Below, piece by piece: positions 17,112-23,753 of a stretch of 64,000 bases of DNA. Made by a program: the position numbers and the translations under genes. The stretch is from Salpingoeca rosetta (lineage: Eukaryota; Protista; Choanoflagellata). The notes below the pieces were generated by a model that did not search any database, was not told the DNA's origin, and saw only the letters and a list, made by a program, of their open reading frames with translations. Position 1 is the stretch's first letter, and each line of letters begins with the position of its first letter. The DNA is taken from positions 650,746-714,745 of the forward strand of contig JAWQFM010000022.1 of the NCBI GenBank assembly GCA_033442325.1, written 5' to 3'.

Positions 17112-20100
17112 TCAGTAGAAACCGCAGTCTGCAATTTCCTTTCGCCCGCGGATCGAGAGGCCCGAGCGCGTGTTGCACTGCGCATTCACCCCCGTCGACA
17201 CAATGTAGTGGAACCAGTAGCTGTGTGGAGCAAGAAGGAAGGCGGGGAGGGGGGGGGTGGAGGTGGTGAGGACCGTGGTGTTGAGAATGAAAGGAATTCA
17301 AGGGAAGAAAGGGCAAGTGGAATTGGCAACAGACAGACAGACAGACTCACAGACACAACAAAACAAACATACCTTGGGATGTAGAGGACGTCGCCGGCGC
17401 GAAGAACGACTTGCGCCGCCCTGAAGCGCAAACACACACACACACATGGTGTGAAGATGAACACAAGGGGGTGTATGTGTGGGTGAGTGACAAAGCGATA
17501 GAGTGCGTGCAGCGAGAGGAAGAGAGAGGGTGCGTGTTGTGTTGTATGTTCATTGTGAGGCAAGAAGCACACTAAACAGGCAGAGAGACAGACGGATGGA
17601 CAGATGGACAGATACATGGATGTGCGTACATTGCGTTCTTCATCTTTGGGAATTCGTTGAGATCGAGGTCACTCCAGTCCGCCTTGGCGTGGCGCGCTGA
17701 CGTGACGTGGTGGCACAGAGGGCGTGGTATGAGGTGGGGTGGCGACCACATGATTGGTGGAGCACATGGGTGCATGTGCACACACAGATGGAGACGAACG
17801 AACGAACGAACGAACGAACGAACGAACGAACGGACAGCCACACAAAACACACACACACACACACACACACACAGGCACACAGACACACGACACACAGACA
17901 CAGACACACACATCAACCTCCTCACCCTCTGGGTGGCCGCGCGGGTAGAGGTAGAGGTTTGGGCACTCCTCGGGCGGGAGGAGGATGTAGCGCTTTGCAC
18001 CGCGAAGAATCGTGACAAAGTTGCGGCCGCCGTCGTAGTGCGCCTCGGCAATGATCCCGCGTGCACCGAACCGGCAGTTGATGCCCTGGAACATCGTGAG
18101 CATGCAGCAGTAGCGGTGATGAGGATGATGATGATGATGATGATGATGATGATGATGATGATGATGATGATGATGATGATGATGATGATGATGATGATGA
18201 TGATGATGATGATGATGATGATGATGATGATGATGATGATGATGATGATGATGATGACGATGACGATGATGATGACGATGATGTGTGTGTGTGGGGGGGG
18301 GGAAGGGGAAGGAAGAGTAAGGTCATGAGTCAACCATCATCATCAGGAACAGCGATAAATTGTGACAGTAACTGTGCTCGATGCATTGATGGTGCACCAT
18401 CAATAGGATGCTCATACTCACCCTGTTCTGCGAAGGGTCGACGAGGAAGAAGTTGTGCTGTGGAACCCATTCAGGGAAATCCTCACGAATCCACCTGGTG
18501 TTGTCGACACGGCGCCGTGCGGAGAGAAAAACAAGCGCGCGTTATTGAAGGTCAAGCGCCATTTTCAGACAGAGACCATAGACAGACCCACAGACCCACA
18601 CACACGCACACACACACAGAGCGCTGGACTGACGAGTTTGGGCCGACGGAATTGAGCTGGAGATAGTAGTGGTCGTCGTTGAGGGAGGCCTTGTCTGTCT
18701 CGTACGCCTTCTGCAGCCATTGTTTGAACGTCATCGTCGCACTTGACGTGGGCGGCCTGCAGCAAAGCACACGCGCGCATGTACAGAGAGAGAGAGGGAG
18801 GGAGGGACACACACACACACACACACACACACACACACACACAGGGACGGAGACAGACAGACACAAGGCATAGGCATTCGGGTTGTGAGTATCGTGAGGA
18901 GTGTCGGTACGGTAAGCACACCCATTCATGAGGTGGTTGAGCACGCGCGTATTCATGCCACGCACTTGTAGTTTTTCTGCTGCTTTGCGCCCCTGCGGTT
19001 GTAGTACTGAGAGGCAATGAGAAGGCAGTGCACATGGAATGAGGAACCAGCGAGGATGGGGTTCTAGTGAGCGCACGCAAGTGTGATTCCCAAGCACACA
19101 TACACACATACACATACACATATACGCACACACCGCACACATGCAAGAACGCACCATAAAGTGGTTGCTGGTTGACTTGGTGACGCTGTGCTTTGTGTTT
19201 CCAAAGCGCTTGATGAGGTATTCGTCACTGCCCCACTTCTCTGCAACGTCGTTGATCATCGGCACGTTGTGCAGCACAAACGGAACCTGGACAACACCAA
19301 AATGCGAACAACGAAGAAACACGTGTGAGTTCTCACGTCACATCTTGTGCGTGCGTGTATGTGTGTATGTGTGTATGTGAGTATGTGTGCACATGTATGT
19401 ACGTGTGCATGTGATAACCTCGTGCCAGCGAAGATACTCTGCTCGCTTGCGCTGCGTCTCGTTCTGGTAATCAAAGCGCTCCAGCGTGCCGTGCTCAATC
19501 CCGGGGATATCCGGGACATCAGGCTGCACACATGCACACACACAGGCACACAGAGGTTTATATGAGATGCGTGCCATGCGTACGTGCCATTCGTCATGTG
19601 TGTGCGTGTGTGCATGTGTGCGTGTGTGCGTGTGTGTATTTGAGAGCGACGCGAGTGGGGTATGCAACATCTACACGCGTGACGCAAGCCAAGGCAGCAG
19701 CAGCAGCAATACGACAATAACAACGGCACCTCATCTGGGGGCCATTCGTTGAGGAACGTGGGCAGCGGTTTCAGCGGCGGATACGGCTCGTAGCGCTGCG
19801 CGCGCGCGTGTGTTGTGTGTGTGTTGTGTGTGTGTGTTGTGTGTGTGTGCGTGTGTGTGTGTTGTACGTATGTGAGACTGGGTTTAGACACGCGCTTGTG
19901 AGGAAAAGGGGTGGGTGGAACAGTTGACAAAAGCACACCCGTCCATCGCAGCAACGTGTAAGTTCCCATCACCATCATCACCACCATCGCCACCACCTTG
20001 ATCAGTGCCTCGTCCGGGTAGTATGGCTCGCCGTCAAACGAGTTCTTGTTGCGCTGCGCCAGCTGTGCCATGTAGCGGCGGTCACTCGGGTACGGGTGCT

Positions 20101-23100: not shown

Positions 23101-23753
23101 ATTTCTTGGACGAGAACAGATGGCGATCCACGTGGCCGTGTGCTGCTGGCGCCTGCAGCTCCTGCATATCCTTCCGGTATGAGGTGTGCAGGTGGATCGT
23201 GTACAGCAGCAGGCCGACGATGGCCGTTGCCATCAGCACCTGTTGTTCAAGCACAGGGTTGTTGTTGTTGTTGTTGTTGTTGTTGTTGTTGTTGTTGTTG
23301 TTGTTGTTGTTGTTGTTTGTTGTTGTTGTTGTGTTCAGGCAAAGCGCAACGTGTGAGCTTAAAGGCATGGCAGCGAGAGGGCAATCGAGGAGAGCAAGAT
23401 GGAAAGGGCGAAAGGCCGATGCCGTCGATTGGATCCATAACCGCTTGAGCAGAGCCAAAAACAAACAAAATCAACACCCATGCATGTATGTTGTGACAAC
23501 ATATTATGGATGGCTGGCGTTGCCAACAAACGGCACCAACCAGACCAACCAACCACTCACAACAACCAACCAACCGCCCGAAGCCTCGGTTCCATTTCTT
23601 CCACAACGAAACGCCACAACGCTACAACAACACATAAATGCACGACGACAGCCAGCCAGCCAGCCATCGACAGTTGTCACAGCACGAGCACGAGCACGAG
23701 CACGAGAGCGCAGCACGCACCGGCACGGTCGATCCCGACTTGAACAGCCGCAT
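17112..23753 (-). CDS. Type II membrane sulfotransferase-like domain fused to a JmjC (cupin_8) 2OG/Fe(II) oxygenase
   Basis: N-terminal anchor [30 protein letters not shown] motifs [12 protein letters not shown] and [12 protein letters not shown]. JmjC motifs [20 protein letters not shown] and GDVLYIPSYWFHYI. The two halves are joined in frame by a phase-0 intron at 20195-20461. Confidence 0.8.
18117..18283. repeat. (GAT)n intronic microsatellite
   Basis: Direct reading; gives spurious polyM/polyI/polyS ORFs. Confidence 0.95.
20712..20890. repeat. (CAAA)n intronic microsatellite
   Basis: Direct reading. Confidence 0.95.

Follow-up and report, generated by a model that had tools for sequence, protein, structure and literature searches.

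A predicted membrane-anchored fusion of a sulfotransferase and an FIH-like JmjC hydroxylase encoded by PTSG_08136 of Salpingoeca rosetta

Introduction

The closest described system was recognised by Iyer, Abhiman, de Souza & Aravind in 2010, who reported the FIH1 family fused to an N-terminal P-loop sulfotransferase, with an extracellular version of the fusion expanded in Monosiga and stramenopiles (PMC2938197). Hydroxylation followed by sulfation was predicted for the fusion, and bacterial relatives of its sulfotransferase were linked to other dioxygenases and to secondary-metabolite clusters (PMC2938197). For FIH itself, Gln239 hydrogen-bonds the amide of the substrate Asn, and the Q239H variant hydroxylates Asp, its His239 and Arg238 bonding the carboxylate (PMC3045019). 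Here we analyse a 64,000-nucleotide window of the choanoflagellate Salpingoeca rosetta (G000:C22:650746-714745; genome total 55.4 Mb) and describe its gene PTSG_08136, which encodes both domains on one chain and whose 776-residue product carries the label "hypothetical protein" in the NCBI record (P0235 in our protein set). A paper search for PTSG_08136 found nothing.

Results and discussion

A single spliced gene encodes both domains

PTSG_08136 is a single minus-strand gene of 19 exons and 18 introns spanning 23753-17112. On the window DNA, reading phase and GT/AG signals fixed the exon borders. P0235 was retrieved by a word search that started from the S. infusionum homologue, and the whole codons of each of the 19 derived exons run consecutively in that record, as verified by a scripted check exon by exon. 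The exons sum to 2328 nt, or 776 codons, with no internal stop; every intron has a GT donor and an AG acceptor, and the TGA stop codon lies at 17114-17112. Minus-strand translation of 17000-23900 gives protein-like segments with tracts of (GT)n, (GTTT)n and (CAT)n between them. Exons were searched singly rather than as a spliced join, and work on the joined sequence used P0235. All exons lie on the minus strand:

23721..23753 (-): exon 1, residues 1-11; start codon and predicted basic cytosolic tail; matches P0235 residues 1-11; donor GTGCGT
22724..23239 (-): exon 2, residues 12-183; predicted signal anchor (about 23239-23186), then the disordered stem and the first half of the sulfotransferase; 5'-phosphosulfate-binding (5'-PSB) loop at 22852-22829, invariant Glu165 at 22780-22778
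22331..22441 (-): exon 3, residues 184-220; invariant Lys206 at 22375-22373
21964..22049 (-): exon 4, residues 221-249; 3'-phosphate-binding (3'-PB) motif, Arg232 to Ser240, at 22016-21990
21643..21730 (-): exon 5, residues 249-278; Cys254, kept in eukaryote-type members only
21332..21388 (-): exon 6, residues 279-297
20952..21089 (-): exon 7, residues 298-343; invariant Lys343
20462..20617 (-): exon 8, residues 344-395; end of the sulfotransferase domain (Asp354, Lys358)
19997..20218 (-): exon 9, residues 396-469; disordered inter-enzyme linker; 100% match to P0235; no homologue aligns
19730..19795 (-): exon 10, residues 470-491; conserved Pro/Trp-rich segment leading into the JmjC domain; 40 fused proteins all have Pro475 and Trp487
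19419..19523 (-): exon 11, residues 492-526; N-terminal part of the JmjC domain
19155..19286 (-): exon 12, residues 527-570
18966..19006 (-): exon 13, residues 571-584; 41 nt; aligns to FIH
18634..18756 (-): exon 14, residues 584-625; Tyr615 (18665-18663), equivalent of FIH Tyr145
18422..18494 (-): exon 15, residues 625-649
17926..18085 (-): exon 16, residues 650-703; His665 and Asp667 (18040-18032), Lys680 (17995-17993), His-Pro motif
17630..17696 (-): exon 17, residues 703-725; Arg704-His705 (17694-17689) at the FIH Arg238/Gln239 positions
17373..17420 (-): exon 18, residues 725-741
17112..17220 (-): exon 19, residues 741-776; third Fe ligand His745 (17210-17208); stop TGA

The initial annotation had read the locus as one spliced frame without a stop, starting at 23753, and this agrees with the 19-exon model, its exon-wise match to P0235 and exon 1 of the annotated gene. 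The motifs it had named were likewise recovered: both sites for the sulfate donor 3'-phosphoadenosine 5'-phosphosulfate (PAPS; 22852-22829 and 22016-21990) and a complete JmjC Fe triad (His665, Asp667, His745) with the 2-oxoglutarate (2OG) lysine Lys680. The type II transmembrane anchor that it had proposed coincides with the predicted hydrophobic segment at residues ~10-28. For the inter-domain intron, the donor side at 20461 stood and the acceptor did not: the intron is 20461-20219 rather than ending at 20195, a position also in frame, 8 codons on.

An in-frame ATG at 23368 lies within intron 1 (23368-23240, minus strand), where a 21-codon Asn tract reads straight into exon 2; it offers a possible N-terminus with no homologue backing. 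As a start codon this ATG and its poly-Asn tract were dropped, the database model beginning at 23753 with an N-terminus like that of the Didymoeca orthologue. The introns are rich in repeats, with (CAT)n over about 130 nt in intron 15 (18124-18257), (GTTT)n over about 200 nt in intron 7 (20700-20900), and (GT)n tracts in most others (e.g. 20330-20410).

The fused architecture is conserved in choanoflagellates and stramenopiles

An exhaustive homologue search with exon 2 as query returned many matches 700-870 aa long. Pfam Cupin_8 followed the sulfotransferase region in nine of ten long matches scanned and in four further long matches, and 65 collected proteins hold both domains by hidden Markov model (HMM). 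Stand-alone sulfotransferase homologues (400-480 aa) align to exons 2-8 and terminate ~20 residues past that homology, which sets the end of the sulfotransferase at exon 8. Colinearity of the fused homologues with the window starts in exon 2 and runs to the stop codon, a match far above chance.

Complete fused open reading frames (ORFs) occur in transcript assemblies of 10 other choanoflagellates, among them S. infusionum, Hartaetosiga gracilis, Didymoeca costata, Mylnosiga fluctuans, S. macrocollata, Codosiga hollandica, Stephanoeca diplocostata, Choanoeca flexa and Savillea parva. Further fused members include Monosiga MONBRDRAFT_31253 and, representing the stramenopiles, Cafeteria FNF29_04695 and chrysophyte proteins. 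A 927 kb contig encodes one fused protein (P0175) in a single genomic ORF of 2283 nt with no interruption. The sulfotransferase-JmjC fusion is real and not an annotation artefact.

PTSG_08136 is the S. rosetta orthologue of the fusion family described by computation in 2010. The Monosiga brevicollis protein MONBRDRAFT_31253, which matches 93% of the S. infusionum query orthologue at 43% identity, shares its domain order, predicted extracellular or lumenal placement and choanoflagellate tree group. The sulfotransferase domain is single-copy in the S. rosetta genome, in contrast to the expansion described for Monosiga. The 2010 description predates the S. rosetta gene and lacks a gene structure, residue analysis and sulfotransferase fold assignment. 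Three points are new here: 21 of 21 fused proteins have His where FIH has Gln239, the modelled fold is TPST/Stf9-like, and S. rosetta has a single copy.

The sulfotransferase domain retains its cofactor residues and adopts a TPST-like predicted fold

Both the 5'-PSB and the 3'-PB motif are present in PTSG_08136. Across 219 fused, stand-alone and bacterial family members, Arg144, Gly146, Ser147, Thr148, Glu165, Lys206, Arg232, Ser240, Lys343, Asp354 and Lys358 are invariant or nearly so. Profile scores are weak: Pfam Sulfotransfer_3 gives PTSG_08136 19.0 bits, below the gathering cut-off of 27, and homologues 24-29 bits; some relatives reach 28-34 bits. Searched exon by exon, Pfam found Cupin_8 and a sulfotransferase match in no single exon. 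The sulfotransferase family profile retrieved no chain from the PDB up to E 10, so homology to the protein-tyrosine sulfotransferases (TPSTs) is not detected at the sequence level.

We compared folds using an AlphaFold 2 (AF2) model of the domain built from 89 sequences (predicted local distance difference test, pLDDT, 90.9). Foldseek returned 30 matches at E <= 0.001, all of the sulfotransferase fold binding PAPS or adenosine 3',5'-bisphosphate (PAP), with probabilities of 0.99-1.00. In VIA-align the best scores went to TPST1 (Z 15.3; root-mean-square deviation, rmsd, 3.1 over 221 residues), mycobacterial Stf9 (15.1) and TPST2 (14.8), followed by the CurM and OLS domains (~14), heparan sulfate enzymes (~11.8) and cytosolic SULTs (~10). 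The modelled fold is thus nearest to the TPSTs, tied with Stf9.

TPSTs are type II Golgi membrane proteins, a membrane form that PTSG_08136 is predicted to share. The likeness to TPST1 and TPST2 extends to Z 14.5-15.3 with rmsd 3.1-3.4 over ~221 residues and to the same Pfam neighbourhood (Sulfotransfer_3), there with a weak score. PTSG_08136 differs in its ~14% identity and in an N-terminal beta-rich extension (model residues ~40-100) lying beyond most TPST alignments.

The C-terminal half is an FIH-like JmjC domain with a distinctive substrate-side pair

PTSG_08136 scores 107.1 bits against Cupin_8 (cut-off 27.4), and exon 16 by itself scores 32.4 bits. Among solved structures the closest relative is FIH (E 1e-30 across its residues 50-283), ahead of JMJD5 (1e-10), and the best PDB match is the FIH Q239H variant, 2xum. 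His665, Asp667, His745, Lys680 and Tyr615 align to FIH residues 199, 201, 279, 214 and 145, respectively.

Conservation was assessed across 21 fused proteins. Of these, 20 or 21 have the Fe triad and all have the Tyr145 equivalent; the Asn205 equivalent is also kept. The position of the 2OG lysine holds Lys in 14 and Arg in 7, and Thr196, a 2OG contact in FIH, is Ala throughout. Twenty of the 21 contain the His-Pro connector motif that Iyer et al. named. Every one has Arg at the FIH Arg238 position and His at the Gln239 position, so that the Gln239 of FIH proper is absent from all 21.

Human FIH (HIF1AN), an asparaginyl beta-hydroxylase, shares with these proteins the HxD..H triad, Tyr145, Lys214, Arg238 and the His-Pro motif. 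It is, however, cytosolic and unanchored, whereas PTSG_08136 has a predicted anchor, and the fused proteins depart from it by Gln239 to His, Thr196 to Ala and extra conserved cysteines. PTSG_08136 also stops 31 residues past the last Fe ligand, leaving the long C-terminal part of FIH (to residue 349) without a counterpart. Because Q239H FIH acts on Asp, with His239 and Arg238 binding the carboxylate, the Arg-His pair hints at an acidic, Asp-like target side chain; the analogy offers a lead rather than a result.

More distant JmjC paralogues of the FIH-like kind, 33-40% identical to this domain and none with the sulfotransferase, lie elsewhere in the S. rosetta genome, at G000:C25:650852-651154, C14:777485-777781 and C9:984223-984537.

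Anatomy and predicted topology

From the N-terminus, PTSG_08136 comprises a short basic tail, a predicted signal anchor, a disordered stem, the sulfotransferase, a 57-residue disordered linker and the FIH-like JmjC domain. Residues ~10-28, coded by 23239-23186, reach a Kyte-Doolittle 19-mer mean of 2.01, the maximum of the protein. In 20 of the 21 fused proteins, a hydrophobic N-terminal 19-mer (1.7-3.1) behind a basic tail is likewise the global hydropathy maximum.

The full-length AF2 model, built from a 40-sequence alignment, has a mean pLDDT of 85.9 and a predicted template modelling score (pTM) of 0.56. Its elements are as follows:

residues 9-39: helix
residues 36-61: disordered
residues ~62-395: first confident domain
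residues 405-461: disordered, pLDDT <50 (exon 9)
residues ~465-776: second confident domain

Eukaryote-type members conserve Cys113, Cys176 and Cys254, and the corresponding positions hold Cys in 0 of 82 bacterial relatives; the JmjC half has four additional conserved cysteines. The conserved cysteines of both halves would fit an oxidising compartment. Hydropathy predicts a type II signal anchor with both enzymes lumenal, and the predicted lumenal placement draws on the eukaryote-specific cysteines as well.

Distribution, origin and bacterial relatives

The sulfotransferase has at least 568 matching stretches in bacteria, at 29-39% identity, and its family is also plentiful in stramenopiles. 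We reconstructed a 95-row tree covering fused and stand-alone forms as well as bacterial relatives, in which bacterial and eukaryote-type sequences are parted by a branch of support 98. Eleven choanoflagellate sequences, including the Monosiga protein, form one group (support 91, not starred), within which S. rosetta clusters with S. infusionum and H. gracilis (support 95). Fused and stand-alone forms are interleaved among the stramenopile-rich rows, where some "stand-alone" rows may be truncated metagenome calls. This topology fits old vertical inheritance within choanoflagellates; it is also compatible with an ancient transfer, whether from bacteria or from one protist group to another.

The initial annotation had placed the sulfotransferase closer to bacterial and algal enzymes than to animal SULTs, and the family is indeed bacterial and protist, not that of the animal cytosolic SULTs. 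Its further suggestion of possible horizontal gene transfer (HGT) as a feature of this gene was not upheld: the choanoflagellates group apart from bacteria, and the gene has 18 introns. Nor is the architecture novel, as had been supposed, since the search gave 65 proteins from choanoflagellates and stramenopiles and Iyer et al. had already described the fusion and predicted hydroxylation then sulfation (PMC2938197).

An FIH-like JmjC HMM found nothing in the 5-kb surroundings of the bacterial sulfotransferase relatives, of which the 80 best were scanned. As no neighbour is conserved, the bacterial gene context is only anecdotal, and two loci (L062 and L010) serve as examples. In Cylindrospermum sp. 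FACHB-282 (L062:2469-8395), a YcaO cyclodehydratase, a sulfotransferase relative, a ThcOx-type oxidase and a JmjC_2 protein are encoded co-directionally; the suggestive resemblance is to a peptide natural-product cluster pairing sulfation with a JmjC enzyme. In an uncultured Acidobacteriota (L010:2784-9474), equally only suggestive, a bifunctional PAPS synthase gene lies directly upstream of a sulfotransferase relative, and two TldD/PmbA peptidase genes lie downstream on the opposite strand. The L062 protein and the bacterial Sulfotransfer_3 relatives resemble PTSG_08136 in their 29-39% identity and invariant cofactor residues. The bacterial relatives differ in lacking the eukaryote-specific cysteines, and L062 in having separate genes and a JmjC of another subfamily. 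A Nif11-like N-terminal domain seemed present in some bacterial members, an impression that Pfam did not confirm.

Proposed function and alternative explanations

We consider it probable that PTSG_08136 is a single-pass type II protein carrying two intact lumenal or exterior enzymes on one chain, and that these share their targets, namely secreted or matrix proteins or peptides. Its whole catalytic part would lie inside the secretory pathway or outside the cell, a flexible linker joining the PAPS-dependent sulfotransferase to the Fe(II)/2OG hydroxylase. The JmjC domain would hydroxylate a side-chain carbon of a secreted or matrix protein or peptide, and the sulfotransferase would then sulfate the new hydroxyl or a nearby one. 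The prediction of Iyer et al., reached independently, agrees with this reading (PMC2938197). In a more specific and unlikely form, an undescribed two-step modification would operate on choanoflagellate and stramenopile secreted or matrix targets, the FIH-like domain beta-hydroxylating an Asp-like residue that the tethered sulfotransferase O-sulfates; a beta-hydroxylated acidic residue is suggested because it would fit the invariant Arg-His pair at FIH Arg238/Gln239.

Several observations weigh against the main reading. In the full-length model the two domains are not packed together with confidence (pTM 0.56), which gives no evidence of cooperation between the active sites. The modelled likeness to the TPST fold stands just ~3 Z units above the glycan sulfotransferases, at ~14% identity. 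Bacteria have no conserved hydroxylase neighbour, JmjC_2 occurring in 2 of the 80 loci and YcaO in 1 of the 80, and the literature yielded no biochemistry for any member of the fusion family. For S. rosetta, moreover, the case for a single transcript is built from the gene model, splice phases, homology and the share of sequence words (k-mers) in RNA-like runs.

A somewhat unlikely alternative keeps the same gene and topology and changes the substrate to a glycan, a lipid or a small metabolite that the Golgi makes or exports and that would be hydroxylated and/or sulfated. Heparan sulfate 3-O-/N-sulfotransferases and the polyketide CurM and OLS domains are also good folds for the sulfotransferase (Z 11.8-14.0), its bacterial relatives are linked to secondary-metabolite clusters (PMC2938197), and a sulfatase gene lies ~4 kb off on the same strand. 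However, the characterised FIH-clade enzymes all act on proteins or tRNA (family literature, PMC2938197), the top folds are those of the TPSTs, on a par with Stf9, and the Arg-His pair occupies the site at which FIH recognises the side chain of an amino acid. That one domain merely binds or scaffolds, for instance a JmjC domain recognising the substrate without oxidising it, would accord with the change of FIH Thr196 to Ala in all 21 fused proteins and of the 2OG Lys to Arg in 7; this is improbable given the Fe triad in 20 or 21 of 21, the universal Tyr145 equivalent and the invariance of all sulfotransferase cofactor residues.

Two further alternatives concern the gene rather than its product. 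A recent acquisition of the sulfotransferase half by S. rosetta from a bacterium or alga via HGT might be imagined from the abundance of the family in bacteria and stramenopiles, but it is highly improbable in a gene with 18 spliceosomal introns, with orthologues in 11 choanoflagellate species of both major orders that group together (support 91), and with the bacterial sequences split off (support 98). We attach next to no probability to a wrongful merger of two neighbouring genes, one for a sulfotransferase and one for a JmjC protein, with separate transcripts. The linker exon 9 is unconserved and holds an in-frame Met, as such a merger would allow. Yet a stop after exon 8 is reached only by reading through the GT-repeat intron, and exons 8, 9, 10 and 11 each begin and finish in phase 0. 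Complete fused ORFs occur in the transcript assemblies of the 10 other choanoflagellates, and P0175 places both domains on an intron-free genomic ORF. RNA-like runs contain 0.34-0.42 of the sampled words of 19900-21100, against a calculated share of ~0.36 with exons 7, 8 and 9 in the RNA and ~0.20 without exon 9. On exon phases, fused homologue ORFs and word share, we reject the reading of two independent transcripts, which the initial annotation had named as the outcome that would overturn it.

The extracellular matrix and sulfated molecules of S. rosetta are tied to colony formation and mating. With a single copy in the genome, one knockout could reveal the product of the paired activities, and the invariant His at the FIH Gln239 position provides a concrete first hypothesis on substrate choice. 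The discovery is modest, as the gene was annotated, the fusion known and the mechanism proposed before; it nevertheless gives a good bench target for a conserved two-enzyme architecture that has been in the literature since 2010 and is known by computation alone.

Genomic neighbourhood

Sulfatase-family exons, identified by family match only, lie ~4 kb downstream of PTSG_08136 on the same strand (window 11179-12910, minus strand). Just upstream, on the other strand, is a Pfam Nitroreductase match of 24.9 bits (25345-25485, plus strand), the sole one in the genome.

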